This document shows positions 2,750-61,468 of a stretch of DNA of 64,000 bases, piece by piece; within the stretch, counting starts at the first letter, position 1; the number at the start of each line of letters is the position of its first letter. Source of the stretch: Podarcis filfolensis (Eukaryota); NCBI GenBank assembly GCA_964270895.1, contig OZ185437.1. One strand, written 5' to 3'. The position numbers and the translations under genes are program-made. The notes beneath the pieces were generated by a model, which saw only the letters and a program-made list of their open reading frames with translations, had not been told where the DNA came from and ran no database searches.

Positions 2750-3275
2750 TCACATATCTCAAGGGAACTGCTTCAAAATAAGTAATCTGTGATTGCAAGT
2801 CTTGGGCCAATTAGGCTTGAAACAGACTGCCAGAGAAGACTGGAAGTTACTATCACTGCTGTTTGGTTTGCTTATAAAAAGAACTTGTATGTTCCCTTTT
2901 TGGTAAGCATTGCATCTAAAAACCACTCTTGCAGGTTCTTTAAAAATATATATTATAATACTAACTCTGTGGCCCATACATGGAAGAAAACTAACTTGTT
3001 ACACTCATGGTGACAACTGTATATGATGCATCCTATGTCCAGTTGACACGCAGGAAGAGTGAGGTAGCCACAGCCACTGTGAGAGCAGGATGGAATCTCG
3101 TTGGCCTGATCCTGCAGGGCTCTTCTTGCGTTCTTTTCTCAGGCCTGCCTCTTGGGAACCAAGCTGCAAAGAGCAGCCCTTTCCGCGCCTTCCTCTCCCT
3201 CGGAATGCTCTCGGTTTGACTCCAGGCTCGGCTCTTGCCTGTGCAGTATTTACTACCCACAGCTGTGCTCGGGGG

Positions 3276-3443
3276 CCCGCCCCGCTCTGCCAGGATTGGC
3301 TGCGAACGCGGAAGGCCCGAGCCTTCTCTTCGGCTGCCTTGGCACCAGTGAGAAGTGCCTGCGCGCCTGACGGACGTGTCCAGGGTGCCCAATCGCAGCG
3401 CGCCCAGCCTGGATTTGTCAGCTGCTGGACGTGCGGTATAAAA
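3276..3443 (+). promoter_or_regulatory. ID2: ID2 core promoter: GC box 3276-3282, inverted CCAAT 3294-3298, half-CRE TGACG 3368-3372, CCAAT 3389-3393, TATAAAA 3437-3443
   Basis: Motifs read directly. TATA lies about 25-30 nt upstream of GCTTCATTCCGAGC, which resembles the mammalian ID2 5'UTR start, so TSS is near 3465-3470. Confidence 0.75.
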
Positions 3444-4715
3444 GCAGGAACGAGGCGCCTTCAGCTTCATTCCGAGCGCGGATCAGGCAGCTGCAAAGAG
3501 CAGGAATCGGAGGAGGAAGGCTAGGCGCGGAGAGAAGAGACGCGAGAGCCATTTCCTCCCCGTGGCGCGTGCGTTTTTGCGTTTCGTCTCCAAAAAGGCA
3601 AAGCCGGCTCTCTTCTTTCCACCAGCATGAAAGCATTCAGTCCGGTGCGGTCCGTGCGGAAAAACAGCCTCTCGGAGCACAGCTTGGGGATATCCAGGAG
3701 CAAAACCCCGGTGGACGACCCGATGAGTTTGCTGTACAACATGAACGACTGCTACTCCAAGCTCAAAGAGCTGGTGCCCAGCATCCCGCAGAACAAGAAA
3801 GTCAGCAAGATGGAAATCCTGCAGCACGTTATCGACTATATTCTAGACCTGCAGATCGCTCTGGACACGCACCCCAGCATCGTCAGCCTCCATCACCAGA
3901 GACCGGGACAAAACCCTTCCTCCAGGACCCCGCTGACCACCTTAAACACAGATATCAGCATCCTGTCATTACAGGTAAGCAGTGGCGTAGCGTGGGGGGT
4001 GCAGGGGGGGCCGGCCGCACCGGGCGCAACTTCTGGGGGGGGGCGCGCTCGCTGCCTCCGGAGTCCCCGAAGAGCCTGGGGCGCAGGCTGTAGCAGAGCC
4101 CCATGTCTCGCCGAACCGACGAGCTGGCAGCGGCTCTCAGCGCTTGCCACGGTCCCCGCGCATCAGGGCCTCGGAGGGCACGCCAGGCAGCCCCTCCTCA
4201 CCGACGGGCAGCGTTCGCCTGCGGGGCTCGGCCAGCGCGCTGGGCTGGCCGCGTGGAGTCGCCGAGGAGCCGCCGCCTGCCATGCCGCCCTGGCTGCTTC
4301 AGCCGCGTCCTACAGCCGGCTCGAGGCTCCTTCCGGCCGGGTCTCCCGACGGGGCGCTGCGGGTGGAGGCTCCGGCACCAAGCGCCACGCCGCCCAGGCT
4401 CGGGTCGCTATCTGGACGCGCGCAGCCCGCCAAACGCGCCACCGGCGGCGAACGAAGCGCCCAGCCGGAGCCACCTGCGCTCTAGTCCCTGCGCGCCAAG
4501 ACCGCCCACCCGCCCCGACGGGGCCCGCCCACCCTAGCCAGAGGCCGGCCGACGCACTGGCCCCAGAGGCGCCCCCTCCCCGCGCCAGAAAGAAGCCCCC
4601 TCCCCGCGCCAGAAAGAAGCCGCGTCGGGGCTAGCCGGGCCGGGGAGGGAGACCGAGAAGGCTGCGCCGCGACGCCCAAAGACGCGCGTCTTGGCGCAAA
4701 GGGGCCCGCGGCCCC
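3280..4715. promoter_or_regulatory. ID2: CpG island covering ID2 promoter, exon 1 and intron 1
   Basis: Very high GC and CpG density against an AT-rich, CpG-depleted background. Confidence 0.9.
3627..3974 (+). CDS. ID2: ID2 (inhibitor of DNA binding 2, HLH protein) coding exon 1, aa 1-116
   Basis: [80 protein letters not shown]-box RTPLTTLN; donor CAG|GTAAGC after 3974. Confidence 0.99.
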
Positions 4716-18914: not shown

Positions 18915-20189
18915 TTAAAGAATACTTTCCCTCTCTTCTCCAAAGCCTGCACCATCAGAGCCAGTAACAGTAAGGAGCTCAGAAGAATCTTTCGAAAGCC
19001 TGGCATAACTCGAGCGCTGGCTACGCTTATGGGCCACACCTTTGATGTTATCATTTTGTACCGGAACAGAATTAGGACTCGGTCCGGGGCACAAAATGAT
19101 CTGAGAGTGCTCTCTCATGCTCTCAATCTCCTCAAAATTCTGATTAGCTCGGTTGGTTGGCTGGTTGGCGCTGTTGTTATTCAGCGTGACTGTGCTGGGT
19201 GTTCGGTTTAGGTTGTAGGCTTTCTGGCATGCTGGCCAGTTCTCTTCAGGGCTGCTGGCTATTAAGCTGCTGTCCGAAGGGCTTTTCTTGTCTTCCGAGC
19301 AGATTGACATACGTGCCATGGTTGCGTCTTGGAGGCCGCTCAAGCTGAGGGGGATTCCCCGTTTCCCACTGCGGCCATCGTCTTCAAGCTCAATGAGATT
19401 TGCTTTTTCGAGCTGGGAGTCATCTGTATCGTTGTGGAGAGAGTGGTTTGGAGAACTTTCACTGGATCTTACCCCAGAGTCAGAGGAGTCCTTTTTGTCG
19501 AGAAGAGCATCCGTCAAGTACTCTTTTGCTTTAATCAGGGTTCGAATGGGCTCAGATCCATGTTCTGGAGATTTGGGCTGCTTCTCTGCTTTCCCTTCGA
19601 CTTTTCTGTCTTTACCTTCCTTGAGGAGGGGAGTGTTATCAGACTCTTCTGTTCCAGACTCATCTTCATCACTTGGAAGTTTCTGGTAGCGCAGAGCTAC
19701 ACCCTTCAGCTTCAGGTCTGCAGCTTGGAAGATGCTGGTTCTTTCAGAAGATTTCTTCCCTGAGAGAAGTTTGGAGCCAGACTGATCTGATTTTTCATCT
19801 TCTTCCGTGATGGGATCCAATGGAGACGCATCGCTAGTAGACACACCTGATGTACTATAATCTACAACATCATTCCGTTTAATCAAGAAGGACTTCCTTC
19901 CATCATCTTGCTTTTGCTCAGCATCCTTTCCCTTATCTTGTTCCACACTGGAATGAAGGGAGCCTGTTGATGTGCTCTGGCCCATATAGAAGGCTGCTGA
20001 ACTGTGAGGGGAAGATCTACCACTCACCGTGCTAGAACTGGCACCCCCTTCTAATTGTGACATTTGAGCAATATATTCTCTATATGCATCTCTATATTCT
20101 GCCTGTACCTTATCGGTAAGCTTTGAAATTTCAATACTAGAATCTTGAGAATTCAGGCTTGAAAGACTTGGCGTCCGACGGGCCTGTGA
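18915..20189 (-). CDS. KIDINS220: KIDINS220/ARMS terminal coding exon (SQARRTPSLSSLNSQDS...FGEERESIL*): kinesin-light-chain interacting region and C-terminal PDZ-binding motif ESIL
   Basis: Acceptor TTTGTACAG|TCA at 20189, 425 codons open to TAA, strong similarity to the mammalian C-terminus. Confidence 0.98.
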   Translation of the reverse strand, partial: SQARRTPSLSSLNSQDSSIEISKLTDKVQAEYRDAYREYIAQMSQLEGGASSSTVSGRSSPHSSAAFYMGQSTSTGSLHSSVEQDKGKDAEQKQDDGRKSFLIKRNDVVDYSTSGVSTSDASPLDPITEEDEKSDQSGSKLLSGKKSSERTSIFQAADLKLKGVALRYQKLPSDEDESGTEESDNTPLLKEGKDRKVEGKAEKQPKSPEHGSEPIRTLIKAKEYLTDALLDKKDSSDSGVRSSESSPNHSLHNDTDDSQLEKANLIELEDDGRSGKRGIPLSLSGLQDATMARMSICSEDKKSPSDSSLIASSPEENWPACQKAYNLNRTPSTVTLNNNSANQPTNRANQNFEEIESMREHSQIILCPGPSPNSVPVQNDNIKGVAHKRSQRSSYARLSKDSSELLTVTGSDGAGFGEERESIL

Positions 20190-20735
20190 CTGTACAAATA
20201 GAAAGAAAACACATTAATACAAAGTCAGCAGAGTTGACACCAGTCCTTCAAAACAGAAAAGACATTCACCCCAAGAACACAGTTGTGAACAGAGCAGCGT
20301 AACACTTGGCTCCTTCATAACCAAAGAGTACCAACAGCTCAGTGGTATAGAGTACGCCTTGCATACGGTGGGAATACTCAGTGTTGTGGGCATACCAACT
20401 ATTACCTGTGCACAGAACTTTGAGCAGTATGTTCACTTACTATATAAATATTTTTACGGACAACTTGAGATGCATGCATTTCTGCATCTCTTATTTCAAG
20501 CATCTTATTTACCTGATGCTTAGAATAAAAGGGTGAGAGAATGTATGATTCCTGCCAGGTATACAGGAACACAGAGACATCTATAATGCAACATATTTTT
20601 GTCCCTTTCTACAGTGCTGCATGAAAAAGTTCGCTTCAATGGAGGAGGCAACCATAAAAATCTTGCATATACACACACACACCTGCATTTATGCAAGTGC
20701 ACACATGCAAGGTGTCTGTTGCAGAAAGCTGGTCT

Positions 20736-33637: not shown

Positions 33638-33748
33638 TAGACCACTGCTCTGTTCCCTGGACATACTCGTTTTTAGTGATGGACGTGAGATGAGATGAGA
33701 ACTGCCAGGATAATACCTTGGCATGTAAACATATGGGGCAAAGAATGG
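33638..33748 (-). CDS. KIDINS220: KIDINS220 alternative exon (PFFAPYVYMPRYYPGSSHLISRPSLKTSMSREQSSGL)
   Basis: Similar to human PFFAPYLYTPRYYPGG...; TTTCCATAG acceptor, CTA|GTAAGT donor, 111 nt. Confidence 0.93.
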
Positions 33749-35019
33749 CTATGGAAAAAAACATGCAACAAAAAGGGACCATTACAAAAATCAAAAGAAA
33801 ACTTAATTTAACAAATACAACTTATTTAAGAATGTAAAACATAAAAGTAAAACACACACAAACACACAATTTACTTCTTGAGGAAATTTTAACAATCCTA
33901 TTTTGATTATCAAAGGTGAAATAATTAGGTAGTTACATACCCAACTTGAAGCCAATGAGAGATTTCCAATTTAGTTCAACGAGACACAAACAGTAGGACA
34001 ATGGAACATTTTTATAATGAATTATGAAAACATCTATACACCTTCCAAAAGCAATTAAATGAAGCATTTAGAGCAAATGCTAAAATCAGACAGTTTAATT
34101 CCATTCTAATACTAGAATAATCTCACGGGAATAAATGTGACTTGAGGACTATGGCTTAAGTATCTAGGAAGTGTAAAACGGGTGAATTCAAGAGGCAATT
34201 TGTGTTATTCAATTTTCATCAATTTTAGAATTCAGACTGCTTCTCAAACCTTGTCAGGTGTAACTTGAAAAATACTGTGTGATGGAGACCTCTAATATTA
34301 AAAAACTTAGTGACTGGCCAATTCATGACTATGTATGTATCCGGGTCTACATCTGAAGGGTCCAAGCCCAACATTTACAGAACAATCATATACATGTCTA
34401 CACATATGTGAGTCCCAATGAGTTCAATGAGACTTACTTGCAGAGATAATTGGCTATAGGGTTGCAGTCTTAATCCAGTTTGTGTGATGAAGTCAACACA
34501 CACAGGTTTCTGCAGGGTTTACACATAATCACCATCTTTGGATGATCACATCCTTAATAAGCAGAGATAAGAACAAATATTTTGCTTGCACATACAAACC
34601 TTTCACTCTTTAAAAAAAGTGCCCTCTAGTTAGCCAAAGTTCCCAGACTATTCACCAGTGTTTGAGGCTGGTTTACTATAATGGCTTTTTCCAAAGCTAA
34701 GCTAGCAAGCACAGTTTCCTGGTTTGAGCTACATGATTCATGGTCTGAGAGGAACAAAAAGGCTGTGTGTGCAGGCAAAAGGCTCATTTGCATCTCATTT
34801 CAAGCCAAAATATGGTCACCCATACTAGGTTGATGAACTATTCTACATGCATCCAGATTGCAAAACAGCACCCTGGTTGAACACACTTTTCAGAGATTGG
34901 TTTGTGTAGCACTTGGCAACCTGGTAAACCATTGAGAAGACTAGTTCAACACGTGCCGTAACTCCATACTTGTAAGTGGGCTTTGCACATTCTAAGCAGC
35001 CAACATTACGCCCTTTACC

Positions 35020-35127
35020 TGCTGTTGGAATCCAATTCCAATCAAAACCAGTATGGCCCATGGTCAGGGATGATGGGAGTTGCGAGTCCAACAACATCTG
35101 GAGGGCACCAGGTTGGGGAAGCCGCTT
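35020..35127. mobile_element. hAT-like MITE fragment
   Basis: GGTCAGGGATGATGGGAGTTGCGAGTCCAACAACATCTGGAGGGCACCAGGTTGGGGAAG half of the same family. Confidence 0.6.
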
Positions 35128-35549
35128 TAACCTATGAGCGACCCTATAAACAACCTTCCTTCTATGCAGTTACCAAAACCATGGAGCCTAATCTTTCTTC
35201 CATTTGTCTACTTCCTGCAATTATGTAAAGATTTATGGCTACCGATAGTCTTGCTCAAACGTGCATGTTCAAAACCAGCACACTAAAAGAGACAAAATCT
35301 TTTTTAAAAAATTCTGAGCATATTCCAAAATATTTCATCACTGTTGCATCATTCGAACCAAAAGTGCATTTCTTCACAAACTTAGCCCCATGGTTGAGAT
35401 TTGCTGTGTACTTATGAATAAAAATGCTATGGTTTTCATCAGTTTTCTGCTGAAGAAGTGTGGCATTTTAAACAAAGTATTTATTACACCAGGAAAATCA
35501 TCATCATCATCATCATGCGTCAATTTTCAAAAGCAGCTTTCTTTCTTAC

Positions 35550-35776
35550 TCTATTATAGAATGGATGCTGAGGTCCGGTCATGCCGCTGTAGTAGCTGCT
35601 GTGAGGCTGTGGAGATACAACTCCTGCATTAAAAGGCCCATTAAAGGAGTGTGTCGAAGAGCAGGCTGAGGAAGGCTGGCTAAACACCGACGATGCTCTA
35701 GGAGCTGCCTCTTGCAAAGGTAACGTGGGATATGGGATTGCTCCAATGTTAATTTGGTCTCTTGCAGCACGGACAT
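35550..35776 (-). CDS. KIDINS220: KIDINS220 exon, proline-rich region ([12 protein letters not shown]...GPQHPFYNR)
   Basis: Phase 1-0, 227 nt, AG/GT bounded, clear similarity to the mammalian exon. Confidence 0.97.
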
Positions 35777-36683
35777 CTGAAATATTTAATTTGCAAAAGT
35801 AATCAGCAAGCATTGCCAATAACATATAATCTAAAAATCAAAACAAAGGACACAATTAGAGCTTCCTGGCAAATTGTTGCACGTTCTGTTCTCTCTCTGG
35901 AGACAGAAGTGGATTCAGCATTAAGATCAGTCTCTCTCTCCCAGAACCAGAGGAAGAACAAAAACTTGGAAGGTCTTGGCAGAACAAGGGCTTTCCTTTC
36001 TTTCTCCAGACCTCTTAGTTCAACACTGAGAACGCAGAATCTCAAAATAAATAAATTTAAGAGCTGACCCCTGCTTCCTCAAACCCCTGTTATATACGAG
36101 TACTGCTCCATTATGGAGAGCAATGAAAACAGCAAGGATCAGTGGCAGCTGGTCCTTATTGGTCCTGGCAGAAGACAGGGCAGCAAATGGTAGATAAAGG
36201 CAGTGGTAGACACGCCCCATTCTACTGGTTCTGCTCCTTTCAAATTACCTTGCGAGAATTATGAATGAAGGACCTTCAAGAAAGTGGTGTGTCTCCACAT
36301 TACTTCTATAAGGAGAGGGGCAACCAAACCTCAAAAAAGAGTAAGGAAAGTAGGGGGGGGTGGATAAGACATTTGTCAAATCCCCCCACCCCGTCCCAAC
36401 AGGAAGCAGACTAAAGGGGCAGTTTCATATTACCTCTTGCTCCCTATTTTTGCTGCTGCAGCTAACAAACGTATGGAAGAAGGGAAAATGCTAAGGGGAG
36501 ACGCTGGTGATGCTAAGCACCCCCTCCCCTCAGCTCCCTTCACCCACTGCATTGTCCTCTATTATAAATAATAATAATAATAAATAGACTCACTCACTGA
36601 GATGTTTTTTTCCTGATGCTTGGCTTCATTCCACCTCCACTCCAAGTTCCCTCTCTCTCTGTCTTTCTGTCTGTTACTGTCTG

Positions 36684-52917: not shown

Positions 52918-53244
52918 CTAAAAAAAGAGAAAAGAAAATAATTAATCAAAAGGTAATTCCAGAGGCGGTTCTCTGTATGGCTACAATTGCTCCCTTGCAG
53001 AACAATCTACCATTTTTAAATAAATAAATTACTTTTCCATTAGAAAGCATGATAAGGAAGGGGTAACTAAGAGGAAGGGATGGGGGGGATTAGATTCCGT
53101 TTGCACTTTGAGGCAAGCCTACCCAATACACATCCTGCAACAAGACAATAACTGAAACATAGCCATCCTTAACCATTCTAACCTCTCCAAATTTCGCAGT
53201 GTAGATCTTTCGTATAAAAAAGCATAAACTGGAGTAATTCTTAC

Positions 53245-53409
53245 CTTCAAGTTTCTTGAGCAGAAAAGATTTCCCACTCCCCCATTGGGCATACAGCCCA
53301 ACACAGATGGGAGGCTGCATAGTTGGCTCACTAAGAATGTCGGCTAGTGCACTGCTATAAAGATCATAACCCAGCATATCTCCATCAGATTCTGTCGGAG
53401 ATAAGTGTC
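53245..53409 (-). CDS. KIDINS220: KIDINS220 exon with Walker A ([15 protein letters not shown]...[18 protein letters not shown])
   Basis: Phase 1-1, 165 nt, KAP-family P-loop motif. Confidence 0.98.
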
Positions 53410-53900
53410 CTGCAAAACCAAACAGGCTTCATAGAGTAAATTAGTTATGCACGTAAGTATTTAGCTTTTCATACATTGGCAAATCATGACCAGCATGCTT
53501 AAAGCAACTTAAAATAAACCACTCACTCTTGAAAAGAAACCCTCGCTTCTTTTCATAGTCCCACATAAAATTAACACATTTATTTTCTTTTTGCATGCTG
53601 TTACCTGAGAGATGATTTTGATGCAGTGAGAGCAGCACTGCAGGAATGTCCAAACACACACACACAAGTTGCAGAGCGGTCAAACAAGAGTATATTGTCA
53701 CAGAAAAAGGCACACACATCACACCCCTCTTTTGCTGTGTGTGTGCCAAAATAACTGCAGAAAATGCACATGCACACAGAAGAGAGGAGCAGTGCGATAA
53801 GAAAAGATTGCCACAGCAAGCTACACACACATTAAGGAAGAAGCGGTGGTTCTGGAAGACACACTATTTGCATACAGATTGTCCCAGGAAAACAAAACAC

Positions 53901-57744: not shown

Positions 57745-58427
57745 GCTTGAGAGCAGTACATGTGAAAAGGATCTAGGAGTCCTGGTTGACCACAAACTTG
57801 ACATGAGCCAACAGTGTGATGCGGCAGCTAAAAAAGCCAATGCAATTCTGGGCTGCATCAACAGGAGTATAGCATCTAGATCAAGGAAGTAATAGCGCCA
57901 CTGTATTCTGCTCTGGTCAGACCTCACCTGGAGTACTGTGTCCAGTTCTGGGCACCACAGTTCAAGAAGGACACTGACAAACTGGAACGTGTCCAGAGGA
58001 GGGCAACCAAAATGGTCAAAGGCCTGGAAACGATGCCTTATGAGGAACGGCTAAGGGAGCTGGGCATGTTTAGCCTGGAGAAGAGGAGGTTAAGGGGTGA
58101 TATGATAGCCATGTTCAAATATATAAAAGAATGTCACATAGAGGAGGGAGAAAGGTTGTTTTCTGCTGCTCCAGAGAAGCGGACACGGAGCAATGGTTCC
58201 AAACTACAAGAAAGAAGATTCCACCTAAACATTAGGAAGAACTTCCTGACAGTAAGAGCTGTTCGACAGTGGAATTTGCTGCCAAGGAGTGTGGTGGAGT
58301 CTCCTTCTTTGGAGGTCTTTAAGCAGAGGCTTGACAACCATACGTCAGGAGTGCTCTGATGGTGTTTCCTGCTTGGCAGGGGGTTGGACTCGATGGCCCT
58401 TGTGGTCTCTTCCAACTCTATGATTCT
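57745..58427 (+). mobile_element. CR1 LINE, 5'-truncated, with RT C-terminal ORF remnant and 3' tail
   Basis: [35 protein letters not shown]...[16 protein letters not shown] typical of CR1; tail CCAACTCTATGATTCT; possible TSD AAGTG at 57740-57744 and 58428-58432. Confidence 0.95.
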
Positions 58428-59209: not shown

Positions 59210-59407
59210 CCTGTCAGGAATATTCACGTAGGTTCCTGCATCTAAGAGGTCCTGCACAATTTCAGTATGTCCCTCCTTTGCGGCAATCATCAAAGCTGTG
59301 TTTCCATCTTTATCTGTTAAGTTGACATTTGGATTCCTTTTCAGGATTTCTTTTACTGAATCTGTGAAACCACCTTTTACTGCTACTATAAGTGCAGTCA
59401 TGGAATT
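59210..59407 (-). CDS. KIDINS220: KIDINS220 double ankyrin exon ([13 protein letters not shown]...GTYVNIPDR)
   Basis: 198 nt, phase 0-0. Confidence 0.98.
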
Positions 59408-61038: not shown

Positions 61039-61468
61039 AATTGAAATTGAAATACTTTATTGTCACTTGTACAACTTGTATACAGTGAGATTGCACAAAC
61101 ACCCCCCACGCAGCTCTCTTAGTCTTAATTCCCCTCGTTTACTGACGCACACCCACCAAACCCGAAAGTCAGTTGCCCTGTTGTTATCTTTTCATTCAGC
61201 AGCCTAACAGCCCACAGATAGAAGCTGCTCTTTACCCTGTTGGTGCGACTAATCATGCTTCTATATCTTCTGCCCGAGCGCAGGCGATCAAGTAAGTGCC
61301 GGCCAGGGTGTGAATCATCCCTGAGAATTTTCCTCACTCTCCTGAGGCAACGTTCTTCCGCTATTTCATCCAGCGGATTCAGGGGACAGCCCATAATATC
61401 TTGTGCTGTATTCACCACCCTCTGTAGGCACTTCCTATCAGTTGATGTCAAACCAGTGTACCACACTT
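61039..61468 (-). mobile_element. Rex1/Babar-clade LINE 3' fragment
   Basis: WYTG...RKCLQRVVNTAQDIMG...SHPG...SGRRYRS...RVKSSFYLWAVRLLN is the Rex1/Babar ORF C-terminal signature; AATAAA at 61056-61061 followed by a TTTCAA-repeat tail. Confidence 0.8.

Follow-up and report, generated by a model that had tools for sequence, protein, structure and literature searches.

The minus-strand exon at 35776-35550 carries phenylalanine at the position of rat Tyr1096 in KIDINS220/ARMS and, judged from the vertebrate comparison below, is most probably an ordinary constitutive squamate KIDINS220 exon, in which this phenylalanine and the adjacent Ala/Ser-rich stretch are ancestral bony-vertebrate sequence that was kept and not lost.

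The KIDINS220/ARMS locus

The window, i.e., the whole stretch of 64,000 nt of Podarcis filfolensis DNA that was analysed, contained zero N. Most of the KIDINS220/ARMS gene was located on its minus strand, and the crocodile orthologue (P0343, 1764 aa) was colinear with it by tblastn, with 1630 residues mapped to the minus strand from residue ~131 near 61.8 kb to the last residue at 18918. The main features of the locus were as follows:

59210-59407, minus strand: ankyrin-repeat exon of KIDINS220 (PF00023, E=3.5e-16; PF12796 also)
53240-53425, minus strand: KAP-family P-loop exon of KIDINS220 (PF07693, E=1.6e-13)
35550-35776, minus strand: KIDINS220 exon with the Tyr1096-equivalent region (sequence, splice sites, tblastn, X15 contig)
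33638-33748, minus strand: next KIDINS220 exon, 37 codons, PFFAPYVYMPRYYPGSSHLISRPSLKTSMSREQSSGL (AG/GT sites; X15 joint 33748-35550)
18915-20192, minus strand: last KIDINS220 exon, ending in EERESIL-stop (translation)
3627-3974, plus strand: first coding exon of ID2 (HLH, E=5.7e-16; best solved-structure match ID-2, E=1.4e-48)

Further ankyrin-repeat exons of the gene were detected up to ~61774 (tblastn, crocodile query), and the KAP P-loop/transmembrane region gave colinear tblastn matches with crocodile residues 403-772. The last exon, which was 92% identical to gecko and python and 80% identical to rat, terminated in GAGFGEERESIL followed by the stop codon, with ESIL at 18929-18918. ID2 was found ~15 kb beyond the KIDINS220 3' end, and the two genes adjoin each other in mammals as well. 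As the ankyrin-repeat and KAP exons, the colinear crocodile mapping, and the neighbouring ID2 were all present, together with the C-terminal ESIL, the locus is the KIDINS220/ARMS orthologue. Crocodile residues 1161-1182 gave no tblastn match in the window, where one was expected between 33638 and 25687 on the minus strand; the small exon encoding them was either overlooked or is absent in P. filfolensis.

Retroelement-like ORFs were observed within KIDINS220 introns at 58012-58359 (plus strand) and 61125-61466 (minus strand). The segment 35012-35179, in the intron that immediately follows the 35550-35776 exon, was a highly repeated interspersed element with many joints and loose ends, for which the summed contig depth reached ~4e4 to 2e5 in three runs versus 10-95 around it. 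The region 3000-4700 around the first ID2 exon was GC-rich, had long spurious ORFs on both strands, and looks like a CpG-island-type promoter region.

The exon and the counterpart of Tyr1096

The exon was flanked by an acceptor AG at 35778-35777 and a donor GT at 35549-35548. Its first base closes a codon opened in the preceding exon; read in frame, the peptide (35550-35774, minus strand) comprised 75 residues ending in PFYNR. It matched residues 1043-1120 of crocodile P0343 (tblastn E=1.2e-37), gave phmmer matches down to E=1.8e-39, and was ~96% identical to the gecko sequence. The exon 3' boundary and its splice were confirmed by the RNA-like contig X15 from a related organism, which ended at 35550 and was joined straight to 33748; the skipped segment had the ends CT..AC on the plus strand, corresponding to GT..AG on the minus strand. 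The motifs relevant to CrkL docking were as follows (the slash marks the splice junction):

35712-35729, minus strand: PTLPLQ, a PxLP motif shared by every vertebrate sampled (PPLPLH in mammals)
35691-35705, minus strand: APRAS, counterpart of rat PPRPP (1089-1093) by alignment, without PxxP
35682-35684, minus strand: TTT, Phe, homologue of rat/mouse Tyr1096 (codons TCG TCG GTG TTT AGC CAG CCT)
35673-35684, minus strand: FSQP, a would-be YxxP with the +3 Pro present (FxxP alignment)
35550-35558, minus strand: TAT AAT AGA, Tyr-Asn-Arg, start of YNR/P (YxxP), which spans the splice junction

The span 35670-35711 on which an earlier note had focused encodes 14 residues. That note had placed TTT (Phe) at 35684-35682, which was borne out by the minus-strand sequence, and had equated this Phe with rat Tyr1096 and the polyproline motif with PPRPP. 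Residue 1096 of rat isoform X17 (P0398, 1714 aa) and of mouse isoform 3 (P0392) is the Tyr of GYSQP, with PPRPP at 1089-1093, and Phe was found at residue 1096 in chicken and 10 other birds. The lizard exon aligned with rat PPRPPSGYSQP without gaps, and this alignment and the coinciding rodent and bird numbering confirm both assignments. The region is of low complexity, with many Pro, Ser, and Ala residues, and is likely disordered, so the real counterpart of Tyr1096 might be sought in another residue of the lizard exon; such a misalignment is exceedingly improbable, as the register was gap-free from the invariant LPL(Q/H)(E/D) through an invariant Arg at position -5 to the SQP that directly follows the site, and as residue numbers were identical between rodents and birds.

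The base call was checked using Logan contigs, not raw reads. The contigs of run X1 covered 35094-36000 with 0 differences from the window. Run X3, from the same organism but from another sample and study, showed 3 substitutions over 35094-36000, of which two were intronic (35336 and 35888) and the third was an A>C according to the change tally, its position not being located. The two A>T changes of X3 were both outside the exon; as TAT would need an A>T at 35683, TAT was absent from X3. TTT and TAT are one base apart and only contigs were compared, but an assembly or sequencing error concealing a true TAT has a negligible probability, since the contigs of the two independent samples agree with TTT and Phe was also present in gecko, python, and two further squamate-like Logan fragments.

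Distribution of phenylalanine and tyrosine among vertebrates

A representative search with the 75-residue exon peptide returned 50 matches, mostly exon-sized Logan fragments, among which the Tyr1096 column was already mixed. Placental isoforms only were recovered by a word search with full-length horse P0012, and named non-mammals by word searches with the exon region of arowana P0032 and Arapaima P0187. Logan fragments were placed by similarity to named sequences. The alignment across vertebrates, which the earlier note had proposed, thereby covered squamates, birds, amphibians, fish, and placentals. A look-up of large clusters for marsupial, monotreme, and turtle KIDINS220 found none; the turtle entries, in the 90% cluster of a bird KIDINS220 (P0306), were MBOAT2 proteins, probably owing to models in which KIDINS220 is joined to the adjacent MBOAT2 gene.

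Phe was found in coelacanth (Latimeria) and lungfish (Protopterus), and in bichirs (Polypterus and Erpetoichthys), two species of sturgeon (Acipenser), paddlefish (Polyodon), gar (Lepisosteus), and bowfin (Amia). In teleosts, whose gene copies were assigned by sequence type and not by tree, Phe occurred in both copies in elopomorphs and in one copy in osteoglossomorphs, Denticeps, Chanos, cyprinids, a catfish, and a salmonid. Among tetrapods, it was present in the caecilian Rhinatrema, five of seven frog genera (Xenopus, Engystomops, Pelobates, Hyperolius, and Mixophyes), Crocodylus, ~20 bird species including a palaeognath (tinamou), the gecko Sphaerodactylus, Python, the window lizard, and the same two squamate-like fragments. 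Leu was found in axolotl (Ambystoma mexicanum, P0315) and in the Logan transcript P0344 (AASVLSQP), and the position thus tolerates a non-aromatic hydrophobic residue.

Tyr was present in 117 of the 118 placental sequences from the horse-query word search. It was also found in the distantly related frogs Bombina bombina (P0323) and Eleutherodactylus coqui (P0335), both with VYSQPP, a mammal-like YxxP, and in teleosts in the other gene copy from osteoglossomorphs onward and in the first copy in neoteleosts. Two placental exceptions, each known from single annotated gene models, were the golden mole Chrysochloris asiatica (P0103), with Phe (PRPQSGFSQP), and the pygmy sperm whale Kogia breviceps (P0360 and P0415), with Cys (PRPTSGCSQP); Myotis had neither PxxP nor the +3 Pro. 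Most fish tyrosines were followed by residues other than the +3 Pro (YSQH, YSQV, and YGQH) and are, for this reason, not canonical YxxP sites. FxxP was shared by coelacanth, lungfish, bichirs, sturgeon, gar, frogs, crocodile, birds, python, and the window.

Among the named taxa, PPRPP or another PxxP in its place was found in mammals and, outside them, in a single elopomorph copy. Its equivalents elsewhere were Ala/Ser-rich, e.g., APRAA in gar, PPRAA in sturgeon, PPRAT in frog, and PARAS in crocodile. A Logan fragment (P0010; runs SRR31175908 and SRR31175910; L005 and L006) combined a mammal-like PPRPP with Phe (PPRPPSVFSQH) and was closest to elopomorph or basal-fish sequences.

Polarity of the change

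The earlier note had described the CrkL docking site as naturally lost, with an eroded polyproline motif. If only mammals and the many teleosts with Tyr are compared, the lizard Phe does look like a loss. However, Phe was found in all sampled outgroups to tetrapods (lungfish and coelacanth) and to teleosts (Holostei, Chondrostei, and Polypteriformes), as well as in the caecilian, most frogs, crocodile, and birds, and PPRPP was confined to mammals among the named taxa apart from the elopomorph copy mentioned above. The motif R-A-(A/S)-S-V-F-S-Q-P-S-S was almost invariant across a range that extends from bichir and coelacanth as far as birds and lizards. In the 18-residue segment, lizard and gar differed at 2 of 18 positions and lizard and coelacanth at 5; for rat, the corresponding counts were 9 of 18 and 7. 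The loss or erosion of an ancestral Tyr/PPRPP site in this lizard or in squamates is therefore very unlikely, and the description of the site as lost did not hold, as the outgroups share Phe and the Ala/Ser-rich stretch and the lizard and gar segments agree at 16/18 positions. Of the further statement that both docking determinants are altered, the absence of the rat forms stood; their "erosion" did not, ancestral sequence being found instead.

With Phe at the osteichthyan root, the accepted vertebrate tree requires zero changes on the path to the lizard. Tyr would have arisen at least five times: in placentals, two frog lineages, and two teleost copies (copies defined by sequence type). On fish alone, a Tyr ancestor would still be admissible, Tyr being common in teleosts; only the non-teleost outgroups exclude it. 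The polarity holds for Osteichthyes only, in a sample without cartilaginous fishes, lampreys, turtles, tuatara, marsupials, or monotremes. Within this frame, the alignment supports Tyr and PPRPP as probably derived in placental mammals, a gain dated only to before the placental radiation. The alternative raised in the earlier note, that the switch is a mammalian innovation, is supported by the taxon distribution, in which the mammals sampled were placentals only. Lineage-specific loss, assembly error, and misalignment were each rejected, on the outgroups, the contigs, and the ungapped register, respectively.

On the way to placentals, a cluster of substitutions (among them A>P, A/S>P, V>G, and F>Y) would have turned the ancestral segment into PPRPPSGYSQP. 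This remodelling would have created both a PxxP stretch and a YxxP site of the type bound by the SH2 domain of Crk/CrkL when phosphorylated. As the +3 Pro of FSQP is ancestral, one T>A change suffices for YSQP.

CrkL docking and signalling

The rat CrkL docking module reportedly goes back to the work of Arevalo et al. in 2004 and 2006. At the position of the tyrosine, the lizard sequence has Phe, with the +3 Pro of FSQP present, and at the equivalent of rat 1089-1093, where the SH3N domain would require PxxP, it has APRAS. Phenylalanine cannot be phosphorylated, and lizard ARMS would therefore be in a non-phosphorylatable state at this site MECHANISTICALLY. It would be a natural counterpart of a Tyr-to-Phe mutant, in which the pTyr1096-CrkL-SH2 switch of the rat would be unavailable. 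The Lys/Arg of the classical SH3N ligand PxxPxK/R was absent in lizard and also in rat (PPRPPSG), which makes the rat CrkL SH3 site itself atypical. The conserved upstream PTLPLQ was likewise without Lys/Arg, and we infer that it is a candidate constitutive SH3 ligand.

In rat, the CrkL SH3 domain binds ARMS 1089-1093 constitutively and its SH2 domain binds pTyr1096 (PMC4789535, review), a phospho-YxxP being the Crk SH2 consensus (PMC2689226). When Tyr1096 is mutated, rat PC12 cells show impaired differentiation and impaired sustained MAPK activation (PMC5593494, review). In rodents, the C-terminal PDZ ligand of Kidins220 assembles S-SCAM/PDZ-GEF1 for Rap1 activation (PMC6624258). Schmieg et al. 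(2015) mentioned neither CrkL nor the Tyr1096 site.

The rat/mouse CrkL module and the lizard sequence share the gene, exon, and register, the upstream LPLxE, the downstream SQP with a 22-residue stretch, and the +3 Pro. They differ in that the module has Tyr and PPRPP, whereas the lizard has Phe, with no phospho-acceptor, and APRAS, with no PxxP; the former is the derived form and the latter the ancestral one. KIDINS220 of other sauropsids and of basal bony fishes (e.g., Sphaerodactylus P0200, Python P0230, Crocodylus P0343, Gallus P0379, and Lepisosteus P0244) has Phe and the SVFSQPSS core as in the lizard and differs by minor substitutions only, such as Thr/Pro at PTLP and Pro/Gln following SQ in gecko. 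With the YxxP ligands of Crk/CrkL, namely p130Cas, paxillin, and Gab1 (PMC2689226), the lizard protein shares the x-x-P part (FSQP) and has a separate YNRP; those ligands carry tandem YxxP repeats, whereas the lizard ARMS tail has a single, splice-junction-dependent YNRP.

YNRP, located 42 residues downstream of FSQP, was the sole YxxP in the C-terminal tail of lizard ARMS. It was found in all vertebrates sampled (rat, donkey, crocodile, tinamou, Xenopus, gar, coelacanth, and gecko among them). Its +3 Pro is contributed by CCA, the first codon of the next exon (33748-33638), the junction reading PFYNR/PF. In mammals, this next exon is a cassette, and horse P0148 and others read FYNR/GSGP, not FYNR/PFFA; as skipping it (FYNRGSGP) drops the +3 Pro, YNRP is isoform-dependent. 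The ESIL PDZ ligand was intact in the lizard and, by the rodent work, would represent a Tyr1096-independent route to Rap1. Any coupling of Trk and ARMS to Rap1 and ERK in the lizard would run through the ESIL ligand, the PxLP motif, or the YNR/P tyrosine. The sequence, the homology, the taxon distribution, and the polarity within Osteichthyes are direct results, whereas all that concerns binding and signalling, including the rewiring suggested in the earlier note, is conjectural.

Function might also be unchanged, with CrkL docking on lizard ARMS elsewhere (YNR/P for SH2 and PxLP for SH3) and sustaining Rap1/ERK as in rat. YNRP is intact in the lizard and conserved in all sampled vertebrates, PTLPLQ is conserved, and the ESIL ligand, which feeds Rap1 through S-SCAM/PDZ-GEF1 in rodents (PMC6624258), is intact. 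The golden mole with Phe, Kogia with Cys, and Myotis without PxxP and the +3 Pro point in the same direction and suggest that some lineages can do without the site. However, rat has YNRP and PPLPLH, yet mutation of Tyr1096 alone impairs sustained MAPK activation (PMC5593494), so YNRP and PxLP are not obvious substitutes for Tyr1096; in addition, YNRP is without its +3 Pro in isoforms skipping the next exon. On this sequence evidence, unchanged function seems possible but somewhat doubtful.

Returning to the ancestral-Phe reading, we give about equal weight for and against the broader proposal that the pTyr1096-CrkL switch, by which sustained signalling from neurotrophins to ERK through ARMS is defined in rodents, originated within the mammalian lineage. 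It would have been built by ~7 substitutions in an 18-residue segment that had been nearly frozen for >400 million years, with the +3 Pro as the enabling residue. Non-mammals such as the lizard, birds, and most frogs would carry a natural Phe1096 and would sustain Rap1/ERK signalling otherwise, and YSQP would have appeared convergently in two frog lineages and been lost again in at least two placentals.

Implications

The window exon represents a normal orthologue with the ancestral residue, and matching gecko and python sequences are already public. The modestly interesting point is a comparative one and concerns the textbook rodent switch. The pTyr1096 to CrkL-C3G-Rap1 mechanism was derived from rat PC12 cells and rodent neurons, and the residues on which it depends are missing in chicken, Xenopus tropicalis, lizards, gar, and the majority of other non-mammalian models. 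No paper reporting this distribution of Phe and Tyr was found in the literature collection searched, which was incomplete. The natural variants at this one position (Phe, Leu, Cys, and an independently gained YSQP) may serve as probes of the dependence of sustained ERK signalling on the site, and the pTyr1096-CrkL mechanism should not be assumed to operate in most non-mammalian models.
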